Sequence record: NC_048053.1
Direction: 5' to 3' (one strand)
Length of the DNA: 64,000 nt
The translations under genes were made by a program, and so were the position numbers. Under the pieces are notes generated by a model that was not told the origin of the DNA, made no database searches, and saw only the letters and a program-made list of their open reading frames with translations. The first letter of the stretch is position 1. The number at the start of each line of letters is the position of its first letter. Shown here in pieces: positions 9,042 to 57,626 of the stretch.

Positions 9042-9297
9042 TCGACTCCACCACAAATTGAATTTGGTTGTTAACTCGCACCGACGCGATTCTCTTTCCT
9101 GATTTACAGAAAAGACCGTTCAAGATCCCCACAAGATCTGTAACGTGACTACCAGACGTAGCCGCGTAAACTTCAATGTCATCCGGAATGTCATTCGGAT
9201 TTAGGTGCCACAAAGTTCGTAGCACCGCATTGAAAGTTTCTGAACGTTCGACGAGGTTTCTGTTTAAAAACGTGCAAACGTCTTCGATACTAATCAT
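9028..9297 (-). CDS. Hypothetical protein (89 aa)
   Basis: Overlaps both neighbours in operon fashion. Confidence 0.7.
   Translation of the reverse strand: MISIEDVCTFLNRNLVERSETFNAVLRTLWHLNPNDIPDDIEVYAATSGSHVTDLVGILNGLFCKSGKRIASVRVNNQIQFVVESNEKV
9111..9122 (-). promoter_or_regulatory. CTGTAAAT motif upstream of the clamp gene
   Basis: TTTCTGTAAATC about 70 nt upstream of ATG 9041. Confidence 0.4.
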
Positions 9298-12200
9298 TTC
9301 ACCGCAAGCCTCTTCATCGCACGGCCTAACTTTTTAGAACTGATTTTGATTCTCTCTTTGACTGGAACTTCCGCTTTCGCTTGAGCCTTCTTCCACTCTT
9401 CGAGAAGTTTTAGGTTGCTAGGGATTTCTTTTTTCCACTGTTCAATGTTTTTCTTATCCTCATTGGTCAATGGACATTTCTTAGGCTTACTGCGCATTTC
9501 AATATCATTCGCCCAAATTTGTTTCTGCATCCATGTAGACATGAGGTGATATTGATCATTCATGATGCTGTCGAGAGTTTTCTTAACATCAAGATCTTTC
9601 TCGCCGAGTTCATCACGTTTGATTTCCAGACCTTTCTCCAGAATATCAAACAGAGCCTGATAGCTGAAATCCCAACCCTTAACATCTTTTTCAGTTGCAC
9701 CGATTTCAAAATCGATTTCCGGAACAGATGTGAATTCAAAACCTTCATGACGTTTCTGAACTTCTTCAACAACTGCGCTCGTCATCGCACGTTCAATCAT
9801 ATCCAGAGCAAGGAAGATCCAATCGTAATGACAGTCAACGGTTAAGGAGTCATGCACAGAAACGTTGAGCACGAAATCAGGATACACACCATTCGCTTCC
9901 CAATATTCGTATTTCATGCGATCTAGAATTCGAATCGCACTCATCATTAAATCGGAACCAAAACCCTGAACAGGCGAGTTTACTGCGCGACGATCACAAG
10001 AAGCATAAACGTTATCGGCATCGCTATGCTGTTTCGGCAGCATGAATCCCCACAAGTGGCGGCGACGACCGACCGGAGATTCCACGAAAAAGTTTTTATG
10101 CGCGAATCGTTTAATCGAATCAAACCATTTCAGACCGACCGGGAAACGTTTAAGGAACTTACCTTTGATTTCCACAATCTCATCAACTTCGCGCCCGGTA
10201 CTCTTCGCCAGACCTTTATCGCCTTGCTGATAAATCAGACCAAAGATAACAGTCTTAACTGCGTTACGAATTGATTTCGTAACTTCCATGATATCAATAC
10301 CAAAGAAGTATGCAGCGTTGATTTTATGAACGTCACCTTCAACCTCAATTCGGTGCGCAATCCATTTATCAGGAACAGTACGATAGCGACGACGCAAAAT
10401 CGCGCCCTGTTCAAATACATCAGCAACACCCTGATCGCCAGATATAATTGACCAGCCTCGAACTTCGTGTGCAGAGTAGTCCACCTTAATGAGCATACGA
10501 TTTTTACGCGCAATCAAAATACGCTTAATCAGTTTACCCATTTCGGAACGTGACGGAACCTGTTGCAAGTTAGGATCGCGTGCAGAAGTACGACCCGTAA
10601 CAACTCCGAGATAGCCATATGACGGACGAATCGATCTGTCATGTTTAAAGTCATCACTTTCGCCCCACAGTTTCAGCAGACTGTTAACGTAGGCGTTACG
10701 GAGTTTGTATGCTTTATTCAGTTTCGTAAACAGAGCAACCATCGGATTGTCGGCATATGCCGCTTGGAAATCTTTATCCAATTTACCAAATGGTTTTCCG
10801 TTTGGACGGATCTTATCACTCTCCTTCAACGGCTTGAGTTTCATCACGTCAAAGAAAAGAATTTGTTTATGTTCCTGCGAACTCAAATCAAATTTCTGGA
10901 CATGCACTTCACCCATCAAACCAAACTTCGGAATGTTGGAATCCTTCAAGATGATTTTATTTGCTTTCGCTACTTCCGGACTATCTAAGAACTCACGCTC
11001 AACGTTTTTGATTTCTTGGTTAATCGGACTGTTCGGAAGATTCAGTTTAAACAGGTAGTCAATATCAGCACCTGCGCCTGTACTTTCCAGAATACTAAAC
11101 GCATGAATCTGATCGCTAATCTGTTTGCTAACCATCGACTCATATTTGTCGTAGCCGATATCTTTCGCACGTTGAATTTGTTTCTCATGAAGCAAGAACG
11201 GAATGATAACGTCAGCGCCTGCGTATTCCTGAACCTGTTCATCAAGATCCACATCAGCAATTGTCGCACGCTGCGCTTTGCCGAAAGAAAGATCTAAATA
11301 CAACTCACAGCCATACTGCATAGTGAGGTTAGCGAGGTTGTAATAACCTTTGCCTGTTACCAGTTGGAGAGATTTTGCATTCTCATCAAAAGCAAACTCA
11401 CCTGCCTGAACATCCCACACGTCAGATTTAAAACTGCGCACTCCGAAATTGCTTCGAATAACGTTTAAGTCAAACTTCGCGTTAGCGTAAATCTGATATT
11501 TGTTTTCGTTCTTTTCAAAGTAATCACGGAAGTCTCGCGTAATCTTTTTCAATTCCTTTGGACTGAAAGGACTATCACGATGAAACACCGGAACCACATA
11601 CGCTGTCTTGCCGTCCATACAAAACTGAACGGTAAGAACTTTGTTTACGATGCGGTTAAGGTTTTCTGTTTCGGTATCCACTGCAACCTTTTCGGCTACA
11701 GTTAATTCCTGCATCAGCTTTTTGAATTTGCTATACTTCGTGATGTACTTGAGATTCCAGTTACGATCTTTTCCACTCGTAACTTTACGAATCTTGTACG
11801 GCATTTCACAATCGTTGAACCACGGTAACATCCAACGCGCCATGTAGCCTAACGTATAGCTGGTTCCAACAATACTGCGTGGATGAAGAACGCTGTTATA
11901 ACTTACGTTAGGCAGATGTTTAAATTTATGCGAAATGCCATTCACTTTTATTCGTGAAGGAATGATCACGCCGTACCAGTTACTGATATCACCTTTCGCA
12001 TCATACGCACGCTGAATTTTTTCTTTATTCAAACAGTGGAACGGTGCGCTGCCAAAAGTCAAAACGATTTCTGGCTTATACTCAACGATGATTTCTTTGA
12101 TACGTTTACCAAACGCTTCTTCGGCATCAGCTTTATACTGATCGGACTTGTCGTAAGTTTTAAACATGTTGAAACTAACAACAAGGAAATTCCAATCGTC

Positions 12201-12449
12201 AAGTGTAGTTTTTAACGGGAACGTATCTTCCAGATACTGAATCTGATTCAAAAATGTTTGACCAGTTACACCACTAAAGATCTTCCCATTCTCCAGATCT
12301 TCGGACGGCATATGGTCAACAACAATCAGGGCTTTGCGTGAAGACTTTTTATCGGCGACACCTTTAAGGACACGGACGAAATCATACGTCTGTTGATCCT
12401 CAAATTCTTTCGGTGCGTCATAGTCGAGAGTTAAATGTTTTGTTTTCAT
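9294..12449 (-). CDS. polA: Family A DNA polymerase with 3'-5' exonuclease and N-terminal UDG-like domain
   Basis: Exo motifs DTETE, NAKFD, YAGAD; TGRTSARDPNLQQVP; motif A DYSAHEVR, motif B KTVIFGLIY, motif C VHDS; N-terminal DHMPSEDLENGKIFSG and YKPEIVLTFG resemble family-4 UDG. Confidence 0.95.
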   Translation of the reverse strand: MKTKHLTLDYDAPKEFEDQQTYDFVRVLKGVADKKSSRKALIVVDHMPSEDLENGKIFSGVTGQTFLNQIQYLEDTFPLKTTLDDWNFLVVSFNMFKTYDKSDQYKADAEEAFGKRIKEIIVEYKPEIVLTFGSAPFHCLNKEKIQRAYDAKGDISNWYGVIIPSRIKVNGISHKFKHLPNVSYNSVLHPRSIVGTSYTLGYMARWMLPWFNDCEMPYKIRKVTSGKDRNWNLKYITKYSKFKKLMQELTVAEKVAVDTETENLNRIVNKVLTVQFCMDGKTAYVVPVFHRDSPFSPKELKKITRDFRDYFEKNENKYQIYANAKFDLNVIRSNFGVRSFKSDVWDVQAGEFAFDENAKSLQLVTGKGYYNLANLTMQYGCELYLDLSFGKAQRATIADVDLDEQVQEYAGADVIIPFLLHEKQIQRAKDIGYDKYESMVSKQISDQIHAFSILESTGAGADIDYLFKLNLPNSPINQEIKNVEREFLDSPEVAKANKIILKDSNIPKFGLMGEVHVQKFDLSSQEHKQILFFDVMKLKPLKESDKIRPNGKPFGKLDKDFQAAYADNPMVALFTKLNKAYKLRNAYVNSLLKLWGESDDFKHDRSIRPSYGYLGVVTGRTSARDPNLQQVPSRSEMGKLIKRILIARKNRMLIKVDYSAHEVRGWSIISGDQGVADVFEQGAILRRRYRTVPDKWIAHRIEVEGDVHKINAAYFFGIDIMEVTKSIRNAVKTVIFGLIYQQGDKGLAKSTGREVDEIVEIKGKFLKRFPVGLKWFDSIKRFAHKNFFVESPVGRRRHLWGFMLPKQHSDADNVYASCDRRAVNSPVQGFGSDLMMSAIRILDRMKYEYWEANGVYPDFVLNVSVHDSLTVDCHYDWIFLALDMIERAMTSAVVEEVQKRHEGFEFTSVPEIDFEIGATEKDVKGWDFSYQALFDILEKGLEIKRDELGEKDLDVKKTLDSIMNDQYHLMSTWMQKQIWANDIEMRSKPKKCPLTNEDKKNIEQWKKEIPSNLKLLEEWKKAQAKAEVPVKERIKISSKKLGRAMKRLAVK

Positions 12450-12483
12450 ATCGCCCAATGGTCAAATAGACAATCACCCTAGT

Positions 12484-12495
12484 TATTTACAGTTT
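12484..12495 (-). promoter_or_regulatory. CTGTAAATA motif upstream of DNA polymerase
   Basis: AAACTGTAAATA about 35 nt upstream of ATG 12449, just after a terminator. Confidence 0.6.
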
Positions 12496-46670: not shown

Positions 46671-46697
46671 GAGAAGAAAAAGCCTCCGAAGAGGCTT
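46671..46697 (-). terminator. Rho-independent terminator
   Basis: AAGCCTC-TTCG-GAGGCTT-TTTCTT directly after the stop at 46696. Confidence 0.85.
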
Positions 46698-47853
46698 AAT
46701 CCGTGCCGAATTTCACATCAAGAAATTCCATCTTGTCGTATTGAACAGTAACACCGTAAACCAACGGAGATATACGAACAAACGAAATTCCTCGAATAGT
46801 CAGATCGTGACGCACACCGCCAATTACTTTCCTTATGGCGATATCTTTGGCTTTACCGACAGTCAATGAATTCTCATGCAGTTTAAAAGAGTCCTTCACA
46901 TAGAACCGACCGAGATCTCTTTTAAAACTTAGATCATTATCGAACTTTAGTTTTTGCGTGTAACCATTCAACGCACTAACAATCAGACTGCGCGGAACAT
47001 CAGAAAAATTCTGGTCTGCGCGAATCTGCGTAGCAAGTTTGCTACTGATCTTATCTATGCGTTTTGGCGCACGATTGCCGAGGGATTTAAGATAGTCGCG
47101 ACATGCGAGTAAGGTTCCGTGAAATGCTGCGCAATATCTTTCCAAGATAATAGCTTGTTCCGCGTTACACTCTATCTCAACGCAAAAATCGCCTTCCTGC
47201 ACGGTTGCAGCATGGCGAGATTTTTCGTTACCCTGTTTTCTGCGTCTTTCGATCATGATCTTGACATACGCCGACCATGCGTAGCAAAGCGTGAGCATGA
47301 CAGGATCATCTTCTTCGATTTTGAAATGTTCAATGAACAGGGGAATACTCATGCCAATGAAAATTTCTTTCTCGATGACTGCGTTTCGAAATTCACGCAA
47401 ATCGTCATATCCATATTTGACGATTTTGTACTTCTTCCTTTCATCCTCAGAAACAGAATCTTTCTTAGGATCGTTATGATACATATCTGCCACTTGAGGC
47501 CACGAATTAATTTCGTCAGCTTTAACCTGCTTAACGATTTCGCGAGCTTCGGCAATTGTGATATCAGGCCAAGTGCGATAACTACTGGTCACGGTGTCGC
47601 GATGAAAAAATTCATACAGCGCCGCAAGTTCATAGATCTCAAGTGGCTTCTCAACTTTATCGGACTTAGGTTGTTTAGCTTTCGGCTTCGGTTTTGGCTT
47701 CTTCGCTTCAAGAACAGGAGAAACTTTATCCGGCTTTGTTTTGACTTTTTTGCTGCGAGTCGAAACGGGCAGGACTTCCAGCAACTCCCTTTCAAGATCC
47801 TCCAACGCTTTCGTCCGTGCTGTTTTCTTCGGCACGATTAAAATCTCCAACAC
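46696..47853 (-). CDS. Protein with C-terminal TnpB N-half-like (WED/REC) domain, no RuvC
   Basis: By-eye match of residues about 220-380 to the IS605 TnpB N-half: IECNAEQAIILER, FSDVPRSLIVSAL, LSFKR, FKLHENSLTVGK, IRGISFVR...YGVTVQY; ends before any RuvC-I GID motif. Confidence 0.55.
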   Translation of the reverse strand: MLEILIVPKKTARTKALEDLERELLEVLPVSTRSKKVKTKPDKVSPVLEAKKPKPKPKAKQPKSDKVEKPLEIYELAALYEFFHRDTVTSSYRTWPDITIAEAREIVKQVKADEINSWPQVADMYHNDPKKDSVSEDERKKYKIVKYGYDDLREFRNAVIEKEIFIGMSIPLFIEHFKIEEDDPVMLTLCYAWSAYVKIMIERRRKQGNEKSRHAATVQEGDFCVEIECNAEQAIILERYCAAFHGTLLACRDYLKSLGNRAPKRIDKISSKLATQIRADQNFSDVPRSLIVSALNGYTQKLKFDNDLSFKRDLGRFYVKDSFKLHENSLTVGKAKDIAIRKVIGGVRHDLTIRGISFVRISPLVYGVTVQYDKMEFLDVKFGTD

Positions 47854-47870: not shown

Positions 47871-47881
47871 ATTTACAGATT
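47871..47881 (-). promoter_or_regulatory. AATCTGTAAAT motif
   Basis: About 18 nt upstream of TTG 47853. Confidence 0.6.
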
Positions 47882-49510
47882 TGTCACCAATTGTTTGGCA
47901 GAAGAGTCGAAAGGTTTTTTCACAAACTTAATCCTATCGCTCCGCAATCTTGCGCTAGAAAGCAATGCGCCGTCATGCTCGAAGGAATAAACGTGCTTAA
48001 CACGATTTTCTTCGATGGCAGAGAACAGAAGATCAGTTTCGATTCCAGTGATCATGTGGCTTAAAATTCGCTTCCTTATTTCAGAAGTTATTTCGCCAGA
48101 CCAACTATATCGTGCGCCCACTGCGTTTGTGAGAACAAAACCGTCACCACTTTTTCTTGCGCTTTTAATATACGCTTCACACAACGCCTCAAGACTGACA
48201 ACGATTGAATGTGTTTCGCGCTCCCAACGTTCACGAATTCTTTCACACTCCGAGGAAATAAGTTTTTCGGTTAAGCGATCCAGATCTTCGAAACGAACCT
48301 TACCTTCACGACTCAATCGTTTTAACGCTCGCGAACGACACTCCTTTCGAACGCTTGCGCGAATAGATTTCATCGCTTGAGAATCAGCAATAGCAGAACG
48401 ACGCATGGTTCCACCGATACTGAACATCATCCCATAAAAACAAATCTTTGTGATCTCTTTGGGAAGATTAAACTGATTGGCGAAATCTGAAATCGAATTT
48501 GTTTCATTAAGCATTCGGCAGTGAATCTTATGGCGCTGCAACTCCATTTTTAAAATGTTGAGTTGGCTGCTTTGCATATCGACGTTATGACCTACGCAAT
48601 ACGCACGTTGTTTCAAAGCGCGAGGCAAGTTTTGAAACCCGCCTGACTCTTCAAATAAACGACCACCTAAACCACTTGCTCGATATGTTGGATAGTATTT
48701 GATGATCAGACGAGAACGTTCAACCAAAATAAAATCCTGAGACAAAAACGATAGCAAATTGCTTTGCAGTAAAATAACCCGCGCTCGAATTGATTTCCGT
48801 GTATAGTGACTGTACTTTGCAATTTCGTCAACGACTGGTCGCAAAGAAATAGTGTTTGGACTAAGTTTTGAAAGCACATCCCGATATCGCTTTATTGCGT
48901 TACGCGAGGTATTGCGATCAAATGATCTTAAATCGTGCTGAGGTGGAACCAAATTTTCTTTTCCACGTTGAACACAAATTTTCTCAATCGTTTTTCCAAA
49001 CAAATCGCCCTTTGTGAAGTGCGGCGTACAATAACGAATTTTAGTAAGAATATCCTGCGCAGATTTAGGCCGCACTGGATACATCTGTTCAAATATTTCT
49101 TCCTTGAGTTTAAAGCGTCTACACTGACCATCGCTACCGAAAAAATAAGGCGAAGCCGTGAAAACATTCTCAATTAACCAATCCAATGCGCGAGAAAAAC
49201 CTTTCCCTTTTTTAGCATACGTTCCTTTTGCGCTATAATCCCCGCTGGCACCGAAAACATAAGGTAATTCCTTTCTACCTAACGCAGTTGGAACCGGAAT
49301 AAAGGGCATTTCATTGTTATCACGAAACGTAGCGCTATACAACGAACAATGAACGATGTGCCAAAAGAATATTGATATCTGCTTTCGAAACTCTAACTCC
49401 TTATGTTCTGGCCCGTCATACGGACAAGCTAAAATGACATGTTGATTGACCCAAAATACAGTGTCATATTCCTGTAGCATGGGATTTTTGACTAGAAATG
49501 CGGTTTGCAT
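47873..49510 (-). CDS. Minimal family A polymerase-like protein (TV-Pol-like), no exonuclease
   Basis: GGRLF..SGGFQNLP, motif A DMQSSQLNIL, motif B TKICFYGMMF, SHMITGIE, motif C EHDG; ATG 49510 with GGAGAAG RBS. Confidence 0.7.
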   Translation of the reverse strand: MQTAFLVKNPMLQEYDTVFWVNQHVILACPYDGPEHKELEFRKQISIFFWHIVHCSLYSATFRDNNEMPFIPVPTALGRKELPYVFGASGDYSAKGTYAKKGKGFSRALDWLIENVFTASPYFFGSDGQCRRFKLKEEIFEQMYPVRPKSAQDILTKIRYCTPHFTKGDLFGKTIEKICVQRGKENLVPPQHDLRSFDRNTSRNAIKRYRDVLSKLSPNTISLRPVVDEIAKYSHYTRKSIRARVILLQSNLLSFLSQDFILVERSRLIIKYYPTYRASGLGGRLFEESGGFQNLPRALKQRAYCVGHNVDMQSSQLNILKMELQRHKIHCRMLNETNSISDFANQFNLPKEITKICFYGMMFSIGGTMRRSAIADSQAMKSIRASVRKECRSRALKRLSREGKVRFEDLDRLTEKLISSECERIRERWERETHSIVVSLEALCEAYIKSARKSGDGFVLTNAVGARYSWSGEITSEIRKRILSHMITGIETDLLFSAIEENRVKHVYSFEHDGALLSSARLRSDRIKFVKKPFDSSAKQLVTNL

Positions 49511-49545
49511 CCGACTTCTCCAGAAATTCCATCCTCGCCCTTCCA

Positions 49546-49556
49546 ATTTACAGATC
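49546..49556 (-). promoter_or_regulatory. ATCTGTAAAT motif
   Basis: About 36 nt upstream of ATG 49510. Confidence 0.55.
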
Positions 49557-49866
49557 TTTTTCCCCGAACCCCGTCGATCCCCAAATTTTTTCTTCACCTT
49601 GAAACTTACACAACAAACACATACACCCATACAGCATACAGAGCTACCCTAGCGCTAACAACGCAATAGGATATTCAATATAGATAACCGGGGCCCGGAT
49701 ATACATGGTAGGAGCGTTAAGTGATCACTATTATAATATGCAGAAATTCATATACCCCACTCTAGGCACTATCTACTGCCTTAGAATGCGATTCTACTCG
49801 ATCCTGCAAAAAAGTTTCGAAAGTTTCGGAATCGGGAAAGTGTGTAAAATTTTAGGTAGGTGTTCG

Positions 49867-49879
49867 TAAGTCATTGATA
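49867..49879 (-). promoter_or_regulatory. IHF consensus match in the largest intergenic gap
   Basis: TATCAATGACTTA fits WATCAANNNNTTR, with an A/T tract 5' of it on the same strand. Confidence 0.35.
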
Positions 49880-49969
49880 TGTAACAGGAATATTTTTTGC
49901 ATTGAAAAACAGAATGAGTAGATCACCATCAAAACAGCGTATAGATAGCGATCTACTCAGTAAAATGCG

Positions 49970-50523: not shown

Positions 50524-51642
50524 TTACCTCAGTTCATACCCTTTGTTAATATTGTACTGCAATTCCTTTCGCTGTACCGGACGTGTTGTGACAACCCATT
50601 CCCACGACTGATTTTTTGCCGTGCGTTTTTTCGGTGCCTCTGTTACTTTCAAAACATACCGCTTGAACGGAAGAACAAGAATATCTTCCGGCTCAATCAT
50701 TCCACTTCGCGCCGGAAGAACTACAGTGATATTACCAACTGTCAGTTCCTGATCGTAGTTCAAAATGTTTTGTTCTTCGCTGATATTGCCGTTAATGTCA
50801 TCCACGCCCAAATCAAAAATCAAAAGTGCGTGAGTGAACGCGTCAATATTTTTTACGCGAACCGTTATGTGCTGGCCTTTGTATTTGGACAACAAAGCCA
50901 GATTCAATTCTGTTTCCGTTCCGTTGATAACAGCAAAGAGTTTATTTCGCGGTTCTAACACTCGATCATTTACGCGAATGCTATACTTCGCCGTTTTGAA
51001 ATATTTGGGAATAAGCGTATCGAAATCCACATATCCCTTTTTTCTTTCCAGACGGAAAGTTGTCGGCGCAGTTGATTGATCTTTCGTGTACCCTGAAAGT
51101 TTTTGAACGTGGTGATGCGTCATTACGTTGTAGATATAACCCGTTGCTTGAAAGCCCGGTTGAAAACCTTGACGATAACAAATACCACAATTCACTACGT
51201 TGCCTGCATTCCAGCGATCATCCGTATCGCCACCATCGCTCAACATATCCGCTGCATCAATAACAGCGTGGGCATTTCCAACATCAAACATATCATCTAA
51301 TGCGATTGCGCCTTTTCCTTTGCCGCCAAACATTGTGTTCCCGGTAGGCTTGATATCAATTCCATTTCCGCGTGCCTCTCCATCGCTTTCACCCATCACG
51401 CTTTTTAAACCGCCTTCAAGAAAATCATCGGCGTCATTTTCCACTTTGTTGCAACTGCACACCAAACCAAACTTAGCCTTTTTGAAAATGATCACTTTGG
51501 TGCTGTCTACAGACAACGCCTGCTCAACTTTCGATTGGACAATTTCGATTACACTATCCAATCTTTTTTGAACGCGCTCATGCTCATAAGTTTTATGTCG
51601 TTTGTATGTGTTTCGAGTTTTACCTCCGGTCAACCAACTCAT
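50524..51642 (-). CDS. Probable virion neck/head-closure protein with Cys cluster
   Basis: VCSC...CGICY..GF..G and a C-terminal beta-rich segment resemble jumbo-phage head-completion proteins (recall). Confidence 0.4.
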   Translation of the reverse strand: MSWLTGGKTRNTYKRHKTYEHERVQKRLDSVIEIVQSKVEQALSVDSTKVIIFKKAKFGLVCSCNKVENDADDFLEGGLKSVMGESDGEARGNGIDIKPTGNTMFGGKGKGAIALDDMFDVGNAHAVIDAADMLSDGGDTDDRWNAGNVVNCGICYRQGFQPGFQATGYIYNVMTHHHVQKLSGYTKDQSTAPTTFRLERKKGYVDFDTLIPKYFKTAKYSIRVNDRVLEPRNKLFAVINGTETELNLALLSKYKGQHITVRVKNIDAFTHALLIFDLGVDDINGNISEEQNILNYDQELTVGNITVVLPARSGMIEPEDILVLPFKRYVLKVTEAPKKRTAKNQSWEWVVTTRPVQRKELQYNINKGYELR

Positions 51643-53000: not shown

Positions 53001-53011
53001 ACTGTAAATAG
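53001..53011 (+). promoter_or_regulatory. CTGTAAATA motif
   Basis: ACTGTAAATAG about 36 nt upstream of ATG 53047. Confidence 0.55.
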
Positions 53012-56484: not shown

Positions 56485-56511
56485 AAGGGGGCTTTCGCCC
56501 CCTTATTTTTT
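56485..56511. terminator. Bidirectional terminator between convergent genes
   Basis: AAGGGGGC-TTTC-GCCCCCTT flanked by A/T runs. Confidence 0.85.
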
Positions 56512-57567
56512 GCCTTTAACTTTTTTCGGTTTTGCTATCTCTCGTTTCCATCCCAACTTCTTAGCTGGAATAAAACATTTATCTCCGTGAGTTTCTTTCA
56601 AAAATCCCTTCACTTCTTTGATTATCTTTAACGGTGCGTTATCCGGATCAAGTTTAATCAACTTCCCTTTCTCATCTTTCTCACGCGGCAATTTAAAATG
56701 CTTGATGCGAATTAAAGATGACTTTCCAAACTCCGCCGCAATTTTTTCTCGCAACAACTTCCCGCCGCCGTCATTGTCCGTCATTGTGTATACGGTACTG
56801 ACTCCCATCATTTCAACGATGCGACGTTTCTCTTTCCCAAATTGTTCTGCACCTAAAACCGCTAACGCAGGAATTCCGTAACTCAGTAGCGCAAGTGCGT
56901 CGCGTGGCCCTTCCACCAATACAACATATTTCAATTTATATTTCTTCAACATGTCCCGCACAAGTTGAATCGGAAATAAACCTTTTGCCTTAGCCCAATC
57001 GCCTTGTGAGTTGACGTAACTTGTTCCGTTGATCTGTTTCGTTAGATATGCAGCAACACCGCCAATATATTTTGTTCCAACTTTACACGGAAAGAAACAA
57101 ACGTTTGTTCCTGTTCGCTGTGCATTCAACAATCCTCCTGCTGCACGCACAAGCGATCCCGGATATGTGCGCCACTCAACATCTTCGGGCCACTCCATAT
57201 AACTATCTCGGCGCAATGCTTTCATTAACATAGCAACCGTTGAATACGTTCCAACTTTATTTGCCATTTTATCGTAAGTCTGACGTAACGCACTTAGAGA
57301 ATTTTCTCCCGCGTCTTTCATACGCCATTCTTTTATTTCCTGTAATCCTGCTTTTCTCGCAAGATCATTCCACGATCCTTTTTCGCCGCATCCGAAACAA
57401 TGGAAATATCCCAAAGGAATCTCCATGCCAACCGAAGTATAAATTCCGCAGCTTGGGGATTTATCATCGTGAAATGGGCAGCATACAATGATAGATTCTG
57501 CCGCAAACTTTTTATCGCCGGGAAGTTTTGCGATTTCTTCCATTACTGTTTGGTGTACGTCTGACAT
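56503..57567 (-). CDS. DnaG-type DNA primase (CHC2 Zn finger + TOPRIM)
   Basis: CCPFHDDKSPSC...FHCFGC; VVLVEGPRDA; TDNDGGG. Confidence 0.92.
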   Translation of the reverse strand: MSDVHQTVMEEIAKLPGDKKFAAESIIVCCPFHDDKSPSCGIYTSVGMEIPLGYFHCFGCGEKGSWNDLARKAGLQEIKEWRMKDAGENSLSALRQTYDKMANKVGTYSTVAMLMKALRRDSYMEWPEDVEWRTYPGSLVRAAGGLLNAQRTGTNVCFFPCKVGTKYIGGVAAYLTKQINGTSYVNSQGDWAKAKGLFPIQLVRDMLKKYKLKYVVLVEGPRDALALLSYGIPALAVLGAEQFGKEKRRIVEMMGVSTVYTMTDNDGGGKLLREKIAAEFGKSSLIRIKHFKLPREKDEKGKLIKLDPDNAPLKIIKEVKGFLKETHGDKCFIPAKKLGWKREIAKPKKVKGKK

Positions 57568-57615
57568 ACAATAACCCTTGTTTGAAATACTAATTTTCAC
57601 TATCGAATAACCTGA

Positions 57616-57626
57616 ATTTACAGATT
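57616..57626 (-). promoter_or_regulatory. AATCTGTAAAT motif
   Basis: About 50 nt upstream of primase ATG 57567. Confidence 0.6.

Follow-up and report, generated by a model that had tools for sequence, protein, structure and literature searches.

Why would a phage with a complete replisome keep a gene for what looks like a second, minimal, DNA polymerase? The question is raised by JA29_202, located in a 64,000 nucleotide stretch of record NC_048053.1, hereafter the window. The sequence is identical to that of MH460461, the 253-kb genome of Dickeya phage vB_DsoM_JA29, which is a "hairy" jumbo myovirus in the genus Salmondvirus. Note that, unless stated otherwise, we give window positions, obtained by subtracting 124000 from record positions. 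JA29_202 lies on the minus strand (47873..49510), encodes 545 amino acids and a stop codon, and matches the MH460461 annotation exactly. The GenBank label is "hypothetical protein", and PMC6143709, which concerns these phages, makes no mention of the gene. A first-pass annotation proposed that JA29_202 is a second polymerase, besides the main Pol A, and our analysis agrees. The main replicative Pol A, of 1054 residues and with a 3'-5' exonuclease domain, is encoded separately (9294-12458, minus strand). We conclude, with a probability of roughly 0.6, that JA29_202 is a catalytically competent TV-Pol-type polymerase, without proofreading, that has an accessory role in starting, or in filling and extending, DNA.

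JA29_202 is predicted to have a minimal family A polymerase fold

A full-length AlphaFold model of JA29_202, with 11 homologues as input, had a mean predicted local distance difference test (pLDDT) score of 77.7. Residues ~190-537 of the model match family A polymerases. The best structural matches, with Z scores of 14-15, were Pol I (Klenow, Taq, and Bst), Pol theta, and Pol nu. In VIA-align comparisons, Klenow scored 15.2 (279 aligned residues within 188-535 of the model, root-mean-square deviation 4.1), Pol theta also 15.2, Pol nu 14.0, and T7 DNA polymerase 12.6. Scores against RNA polymerases (RNAPs) were 9.5 for T7 RNAP, 9.4 for mitochondrial RNAP, and 6.6 for N4 RNAPII. Foldseek retrieved 90 PDB chains at E<=1e-3 and, among the matches listed, all were family A DNA polymerases of the Pol I type. 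The Foldseek probability was 1.0 for Taq, Klenow, and Bst, with E values of 8e-6 for both Taq and Klenow. Hence, the Pol A palm fold, on which the first-pass interpretation depends, is indeed predicted. We place the polymerase core, consisting of thumb, palm, and fingers, at residues ~191-545 (47876..48940, minus strand).

The fold was apparent from structural comparison and not from sequence searches. Searches against solved structures, made with the protein and with profiles of 11 and 130 sequences, gave nothing usable; chance transketolase matches and a Pol gamma segment (E 1.3) were returned. When profiles were compared with the main Pol A of the phage, or with a pair of Pol A sequences from E. 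coli and JA29, the alignments were collinear and not significant. Note that a genome scan for a diverse Pol A profile yielded only Enterobacterales Pol I sequences, of at least 90% identity.

The remaining ~190 residues form a family-specific N-terminal domain (48941..49510, minus strand). This was modelled separately with AlphaFold2, using 119 sequences, giving a pLDDT of 88.4 and a predicted template modelling score of 0.80. Foldseek found no match for the domain at E<=1. The best VIA-align score was 5.1, which is below the trusted level, and the entries were almost all winged-helix domains: TFE/TFIIE, ORC2, Cdc6, ScpB, MarR, ArsR, RepE, DnaD, and Rpa2. The domain may thus have a winged-helix-like core. 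Neither program matched the model to an exonuclease, DnaQ, or RNase H-like fold. Together with Pfam searches, this bears out the claim that JA29_202 has no exonuclease domain. The protein is basic, with an isoelectric point of 9.6 (8.9 for the N-terminal domain), and DNA binding by this domain is a reasonable, if weak, reading of the model.

Catalytic residues are conserved among relatives of JA29_202

All four Pol A motifs named in the first-pass annotation are present in the translation, and conserved in homologues, with an order equivalent to that in Pol I. Pre-motif A (GGRLFEESGGFQNLP, residues 282-296; 48626..48667, minus strand) is the counterpart of TGRLSS..PNLQNIP in Pol I. The segment contains R284 and Q293, and local hidden Markov model and hhalign alignments map it to residues 665-680 of E. 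coli Pol I. Motif A (N309-V-D311-M-Q-S-S-Q316-L-N-I-L; 48551..48586, minus strand) includes the sequence DMQSSQLNIL (residues 311-320), with the catalytic aspartate at 311 and Gln316 at D+5, the 'steric gate' position. Motif B (K351-E-I-T-K355-I-C-F-Y359-G-M-M-F363; 48422..48460, minus strand) is equivalent to the nucleotide-binding O-helix and includes KICFYGMMF (residues 355-363). The weak match to Pol gamma, mentioned above, covers the motif B segment of that enzyme and pairs K355 with its lysine. Motif C (S-F-E-H512-D513-G514-A-L; 47963..47986, minus strand) provides the second catalytic aspartate and, as EHDGAL (residues 511-516), aligns with QVHDE in Pol I. Hence, R284, Q293, D311, K355, and D513 of JA29_202 correspond to R668, Q677, D705, K758, and D882 of Pol I. 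Respectively, these would be the primer-terminus Arg, the QNLP Gln, one metal-binding aspartate, the O-helix Lys, and the other metal-binding aspartate. Position 363 is the counterpart of Y766 in Klenow and Y639 in T7 RNAP, while Y359 occupies the position of Klenow F762.

The motif residues are invariant across 11 close homologues. We also aligned 130 diverse relatives. Both catalytic aspartates withstand this wider comparison, D311 being found in 130/130 sequences and D513 in 128/130, so the polymerase interpretation survives. Similarly, K355 is present in all 130, R284 in 129, Q293 in 127, G514 in 128, and H512 in 116. Within motif A, N309 is retained by 128 relatives, S315 by 106, and Q316 by 115 (13 have His), giving the family consensus N-[YWF]-D-[LIM]-x-S-S-Q. 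Between motifs B and C, N462 (124 relatives), G489 (128), and E491 (129) are also conserved. Motif B is more variable. Tyrosine is found at position 359 in 91/130 relatives, position 363 is Phe or Met, and an acidic residue (Asp or Glu) occupies position 352 in 82/130. At position 351, where the jumbo-phage clade has lysine, Arg or Lys is present in only 49/130. Together, NYD..SSQ, QGxE, and EHDG make up a distinctive active-site signature for the clade.

Further weak local alignments keep the Pol I order. GRL...Q is thereby matched to residues 665-677, NAxG to the segment TLDGRR, QG to Q849-G850, and HD to H881-D882. Q316 falls opposite E710, given the invariant D+5 spacing and a low-probability hhalign alignment. 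There are also clear differences from Pol I: no significant sequence match, no exonuclease domains, Gln in place of the gate Glu, and HDG in place of HDE. Furthermore, N309, N462, and E491 are invariant residues peculiar to the JA29_202 family.

JA29_202 is an unannotated TV-Pol family member

Using tblastn, we found one copy of the gene in each of 41 phage records (32 Erwinia, 8 Dickeya, and 1 Yersinia), with 35-100% identity. The copy number was likewise one per record across 41-48 phage records. An exhaustive profile search identified 352 cluster representatives (50% identity) at E<=1e-3, including 90 at E<=1e-10, mostly of 450-650 residues. No Pfam, NCBIfam, or PADLOC model matches the family, and the sole match is PHROG 30690, of unknown function. 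The PADLOC search therefore gave no sign of a link to a defence system.

The first-pass annotation suggested the TV-Pol group, and this assignment is supported by two observations. First, our 130-sequence profile matched 31L of Microcystis phage MaMV-CH02 with a probability of 99.8% (E 1e-29, 400 columns), the alignment spanning the full length and including the N-terminal domain from residue 3. The Ma-LMM01 orthologue is 97.8% identical to 31L, and Ma-LMM01 is among the viruses with a TV-Pol according to Iyer et al. 2008 (Biol Direct 3:39; PMC2579912). The text of that paper gives no gene identifier, and we infer that this orthologue is the protein meant. Second, distant relatives have the expected neighbours. 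TV-Pols were described near resolvase and integrase genes, in transposon-like islands, and were proposed to be primase-polymerases that represent the Pol I / T7 RNAP superfamily reduced to its minimal core (PMC2579912). One distant relative (P0052) lies behind a resolvase gene and a gene for an uncharacterized 452-residue protein, and adjoins an integrase gene. Another (P0047) is near genes for an integrase and a ParE-like toxin, and further relatives are in phage contigs. Note that no D5-like helicase, resolvase, integrase, or transposase gene adjoins JA29_202 itself; the virus context is present. Our data support the view that JA29_202 is an unannotated addition to a known, but barely studied, family. 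The annotation "hypothetical protein" can be corrected in more than 40 phage genomes, and throughout a family whose sequence clusters number at least 352.

Like the TV-Pols in general, and that of Ma-LMM01, JA29_202 has a minimal core within a protein of 400-600 residues, with a thumb, a beta-hairpin Arg, a palm (RRM-like in the TV-Pol description) with two aspartates, and fingers with a conserved Lys. Also shared are the lack of a nuclease domain, the additional N-terminal globular domain, and, at the level of the family, an occurrence in viruses and resolvase/integrase islands. However, JA29_202 differs from other TV-Pols in belonging to the syntenic core of a clade of jumbo phages whose replisome is complete. 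In addition, the N-terminal domain is modelled as an alpha/beta fold with a hairpin, while those described in PMC2579912 were predicted to be all-helical. Finally, RxxxK of the TV-Pols (PMC2579912) is KxxxK in JA29_202, the first position being variable in the wider family. TV-Pol fingers are also described as having a conserved acidic residue, to be compared with position 352, noted above, which is acidic in 82/130 relatives.

JA29_202 more likely makes DNA than RNA

The biochemistry of TV-Pols is known from one relative. From deoxynucleoside triphosphates (dNTPs), CcPol-MP, the staphylococcal primase of SCCmec, synthesizes DNA primers, which it goes on to extend (Bebel et al. 2020, eLife 9:e55478, PMC7581432; Rice 2023). 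CcPol alone is limited to primer extension, and the OB-fold partner MP is needed for priming (PMC7581432, PMC10061031). The 2020 CcPol paper describes all other TV-Pol members as biochemically uncharacterized (PMC7581432), and our full-text literature search found no later biochemical characterization of TV-Pols. CcPol resembles JA29_202 in having a family A domain without proofreading, in being encoded by a mobile element, and in being grouped with the TV-Pols. Conversely, CcPol lacks the TV-Pol N-terminal domain and is encoded in a helicase operon, whereas JA29_202 has its own N-terminal domain and no helicase in its transcription unit. CcPol also keeps the steric-gate Glu of Pol I (E710) and Phe762 (PMC7581432), while JA29_202 has Gln316 and Tyr359. 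CcPol is an atypical relative, in which the Pol I sugar gate is kept and a partner protein is needed. Comparison of neighbouring genes revealed no conserved small partner gene beside JA29_202; the downstream genes differ, encoding 385 residues in JA29 (JA29_201) and 165 residues in phage Alexandra (Alexandra_223).

In family A enzymes such as Pol I and T7 RNAP, the residue at D+5 from the catalytic aspartate is the steric gate, being Glu in DNA polymerases and Gly in T7 RNAP. Since Gln is isosteric with Glu, Q316 could plausibly block the ribose 2'-OH. Because Gln takes the place of the gate Glu, and because the tyrosine of T7 RNAP is replaced by Phe or Met at position 363, DNA synthesis would be likelier than RNA synthesis. 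More generally, the single-subunit RNAPs of the T7 type, including N4 RNAPII, belong to the same fold superfamily, and their motif A is similarly spaced (D-x-x-S/C-S). JA29_202 differs from them in having no promoter-specificity elements, Phe for the ribose-sensing Tyr, and Gln for Gly at the gate. A direct scan of the protein with PF00940 (RNA_pol) gave no match.

A second diverged Pol A without an exonuclease domain, divPolA2, has been described in barbaviruses (Virol J 2024, 21:200, PMC11348598). Like JA29_202, it has an uncharacterized N-terminal domain and is found beside a regular replicative polymerase in phages. The two do not belong to one family; hhalign comparison with the representative AUR84708 gave a probability of 12% over 47 columns.

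A non-coding region of conserved length precedes JA29_202

The stop-to-stop reading frame (47873-49630, minus strand) is longer than the coding part of JA29_202. The start is the Met at codon 41 (MQxAYLxKNP), which is common to all homologues and gives the 545-residue product. A GGAG ribosome site is located 8-11 nucleotides 5' of this codon. Beyond is a non-coding gap of 459 nucleotides (49511..49969, minus strand). The first-pass annotation called this the largest gap. Within the annotated stretch examined it is, with one other of 453 nucleotides. The annotation also asked whether the gap is syntenic in relatives, and we find 418-497 nucleotides in 17/17 related genomes, so length is kept across the clade. 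Here, the gap was measured from the stop codon of the gp203 orthologue, since three smaller raw values were due to chance open reading frames of 70-87 residues inside the gap.

At the 5' end of the gap, a hairpin and a subsequent minus-strand T-run (49905..49959, minus strand; inverted repeat 49915-49935 / 49939-49959) are likely the terminator of the gp204-gp203 unit. In the aligned gaps, the sole block shared by every genus is the box AAAATTTTACAC (49842..49853, minus strand), which occurs once in the window. The TTTACA at its core is reverse-complementary to the TGTAAA of the promoter core discussed below, and the two are formally paired in the alifold output. Closer to JA29_202 are three tandem TGTATG units (CTGTATG, CTGTATG, and GGTGTATG; 49620..49641, minus strand), with CTGTA at -131 and -124; their significance is uncertain. 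The variable stretch of the gap, which holds these units in JA29, has related CTGTAGC clusters in AD1/Y3-like phages and not in JA11-like ones. Two motifs conserved between the JA29 and JA11 gaps are unique in the window.

As an origin of replication, or an RNA gene, the JA29 gap found no support from Rfam, repeats, RNA folding, or GC skew. Briefly, there was no Rfam family match, no direct repeat of 12 nucleotides or more, and no conserved RNA fold in the gaps of 8 related phages (consensus energy -3.6 kcal/mol). Scans for sigma-70 promoters and terminators were at chance level.

The gaps upstream of distant TV-Pol genes, in phage contigs, range from 368 to 1072 nucleotides. Three of four have exact direct repeats of 14-24 nucleotides with a spacing of 21-24 nucleotides, which keeps alive the idea of an enzyme with an adjacent site. 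In one contig (L010:1-592) there is an iteron-like tandem array of 12-nucleotide units, and two exact 14-nucleotide copies 21 nucleotides apart, 5' of the gene. In a second (L006:1841-2207), two exact tandem copies of 24 nucleotides, likewise iteron-like, are ~30-80 nucleotides before the TV-Pol start codon. In a third, the 1072-nucleotide gap (L014:6929-8000) contains two exact 17-nucleotide direct repeats 21 nucleotides apart.

JA29_202 diverges faster than its neighbours at a fixed locus

JA29_202 is a single-copy syntenic core gene of the Erwinia, Dickeya, and Yersinia jumbo-phage clade. Phages JA11 and Alexandra share the arrangement gp204 - gp203 - gap - TV-Pol with JA29. Identity between JA29 and Alexandra is 37% for the TV-Pol, 50% for the clamp loader, and 63% for gp204. 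A distant metagenomic relative has the same gene order, with 23% identity for the TV-Pol and 49% for the clamp loader. The first-pass annotation noted, by eye, less biased codon usage. Quantification confirms this; the genome-referenced codon adaptation index is 0.667, compared to a genome mean of 0.745 +/- 0.048, and is 9th lowest of 207 open reading frames. Fast evolution, or occasional cassette replacement at a fixed locus, would both fit the divergence and codon usage.

An accessory DNA polymerase is the favoured interpretation

We propose that the N-terminal domain would supply DNA binding, and that the thumb, palm, and fingers core would copy a DNA template, most likely polymerizing dNTPs. 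The role would be accessory: starting DNA chains, as a primase-polymerase of the kind proposed for TV-Pols and demonstrated for the distant CcPol-MP, or fill-in and extension of DNA at special sites. Bulk replication would be left to the 1054-residue Pol A. The 'specialised nucleotidyltransferase' raised by the first-pass annotation is not favoured, since the family A residues that contact template and primer are all kept. Several points weigh against our proposal. Polymerase activity of the JA29_202 subgroup is predicted from residues and a model, and the steric-gate assignment derives from spacing and a low-probability profile alignment, rather than from coordinates. HDG in place of HDE, and the non-conserved Arg position four residues before the O-helix Lys, are departures of the active site from that of classical Pol I. 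The biochemistry of CcPol may not transfer, because JA29_202 is without the Glu gate and the OB-fold partner. Given the DnaG primase of the phage, the need for another primase is not obvious. Lastly, faster divergence than the neighbours, and atypical codon usage, would also fit a semi-autonomous cassette.

Four other interpretations should be considered. JA29_202 could be a primer-dependent polymerase for repair, gap-filling, or lesion bypass that never starts chains de novo, serving, much as Pol theta or Pol nu would, as an auxiliary enzyme of low fidelity in the recombination-driven replication of a 253-kb genome. This would be consistent with the structural matches to Pol theta (Z 15.2) and Pol nu (14.0), the missing proofreading domain, and recombination neighbours that include SbcCD-like, Holliday junction resolvase, and PD-(D/E)XK exonuclease genes. 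The presence of DnaG, and the finding that CcPol alone merely extends primers (PMC7581432), point the same way. However, it leaves the family-specific N-terminal domain unexplained, along with the long repeat-bearing non-coding regions that recur 5' of TV-Pol genes in other phage contigs. Moreover, in integrase/resolvase islands the TV-Pol is the sole recognizable replication protein, which suggests an ability to start synthesis. We consider this interpretation unlikely. We are more doubtful still that the TV-Pol and the gap of ~450 nucleotides are a self-contained module of initiator and site, where chains of dNTPs start de novo and the winged-helix-like domain would bind motifs in the adjoining non-coding DNA. 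If true, this would be protein-autonomous origin priming by a family A enzyme, in jumbo phages, without DnaG or transcription. We counted in favour of an origin the gap length kept in 17/17 relatives, the weak likeness of the N-terminal domain to the initiators RepE, ORC, Cdc6, and DnaD, and the repeat-bearing long gaps of distant TV-Pol genes. Counted against it were the lack of a repeat of at least 12 nucleotides, an Rfam match, or a conserved fold in the JA29 gap, the presence of DnaG, and a cumulative GC-skew minimum ~8 kb from the gap.

T7 RNAP has HDS as motif C, much like HDG of JA29_202. The protein might then be a minimal single-subunit RNAP, or an RNA-primer synthase, making a transcript or primer from ribonucleoside triphosphates at a specific site, as T7 and mitochondrial RNAPs do at origins. 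The fold also matches these enzymes and N4 RNAPII, neither the Glu of HDE nor the steric-gate Glu is present, and two Pfam RNAP models are blank across the genome, although the search controls were blank too. Set against this, Z scores are clearly higher with DNA polymerases (15.2 versus 9.5), and pre-motif A (GRL...QNLP), QGxE, and NAxG follow the Pol I pattern. The gate Gln equals Glu in bulk, Phe or Met replaces the Tyr that senses the 2'-OH, and there is no specificity loop, T7-type N-terminal domain, or PF00940 match. The common phage promoter-like motif also suggests that host RNAP is redirected. RNA synthesis thus appears quite improbable. Least probable, and very doubtful, is that the gene and upstream region make up a cassette, semi-autonomous and prone to swapping, that descends from a mobile element with a TV-Pol and is retained mainly to propagate or copy up itself, rather than for phage replication. 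Transposon-like islands are a typical setting of TV-Pols (PMC2579912), JA29_202 has atypical codon usage, and the distant relative is 23% identical in the TV-Pol compared to 41-49% in flanking genes of the same order. In addition, JA29_201, which is specific to Salmondvirus and missing from Alexandra, has been inserted immediately downstream. Yet there is one copy, at the same locus, in every clade member examined, the frame is intact with invariant catalytic residues, and no integrase, resolvase, or terminal repeats adjoin the gene. An accessory, proofreading-less, DNA polymerase of the TV-Pol type is the interpretation we favour. The clade described here is a core gene in phages for which Erwinia, Dickeya, and Yersinia are convenient hosts, and so provides a tractable system. 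Questions that could be addressed include whether such enzymes start chains, which sugar is selected, and why a phage with a full replisome keeps a second, error-prone, polymerase.

Neighbouring genes of JA29_202 and of distant relatives

JA29_202 is within a replication and recombination region. The clamp loader and an SbcC-like gene are downstream, while genes for a Holliday junction resolvase, the DnaG-type primase (56503-57600, minus strand), and exonucleases are 5'. Just downstream is JA29_201 (46696-47853, minus strand), encoding 385 residues, which has no Pfam or PHROG match. At this position, Alexandra has the 165-residue gene, which overlaps the TV-Pol stop codon and is unrelated to the JA29 neighbours compared. 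Two genes away on the other side is JA29_204 (50524-51642, minus strand), encoding a 372-residue protein of PHROG 21298, with unknown function, that has Cys-x-Cys and Cys-x-x-Cys pairs. JA29_204 is 63% identical to the Alexandra orthologue and is far better conserved than the TV-Pol. In a 56-kb contig of a metagenome-assembled genome (L014:8001-17719), the distant relative with 23% TV-Pol identity noted above, the order of TV-Pol, followed by gp197-like, gp195-like, and clamp loader genes, is kept. Parts of the window were present as contigs in wastewater metagenome runs only, which are uninformative on transcription.

The 452-residue protein, which has no family match, is encoded directly 5' of the TV-Pol gene in two islands that bear a resolvase gene (L012:2399-3757 and L013:3302-4660), one of which also has an integrase gene. 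The protein is a possible partner. It is unrelated to the N-terminal domain of JA29_202, and we found no partner protein common to the phage and island contexts, the TV-Pol alone being shared. Another distant TV-Pol gene is ~1.7 kb upstream of two QueC-family genes of the 7-deazaguanine pathway (L010:3902-6141), which hints at a phage with modified DNA.

A promoter-like motif and GC skew

JA29_202 would appear to have its own promoter-like motif, of the kind preceding the main polymerase, primase, and clamp-loader genes. The motif, CTGTAAA (49547..49553, minus strand), is 43 nucleotides before the start codon, and a CTGTAAA- or TGTAAA-type motif is found 5' of the TV-Pol gene in 17/17 aligned gaps. 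A second copy (47872..47878, minus strand) overlaps the TV-Pol stop codon, 25 nucleotides before the JA29_201 start. There are 82 copies in the genome, often as AAATCTGTAAAT, which is ~2-fold the expectation scaled from window shuffles. Copies are on the strand of local genes and, for 51 of the 82, an open reading frame starts 15-90 nucleotides downstream. The clamp-loader gene is among these, as are the genes for Pol A and the DnaG primase. Examples in the window are at 12492, 28275, 42981, 47878, 49553, and 57623 on the minus strand, and at 53002 and 62765 on the plus strand. Judging from position, CTGTAAA is probably the main promoter element of the phage.

The cumulative GC-skew minimum is at ~182 kb of the record (window ~58000), beside the DnaG primase gene, and the maximum is at 41 kb of the record. 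The minimum coincides with a divergent pair of CTGTAAA motifs, at 57623 (minus strand) and 57698 (plus strand). Both the minimum and the maximum coincide with switches in gene orientation.

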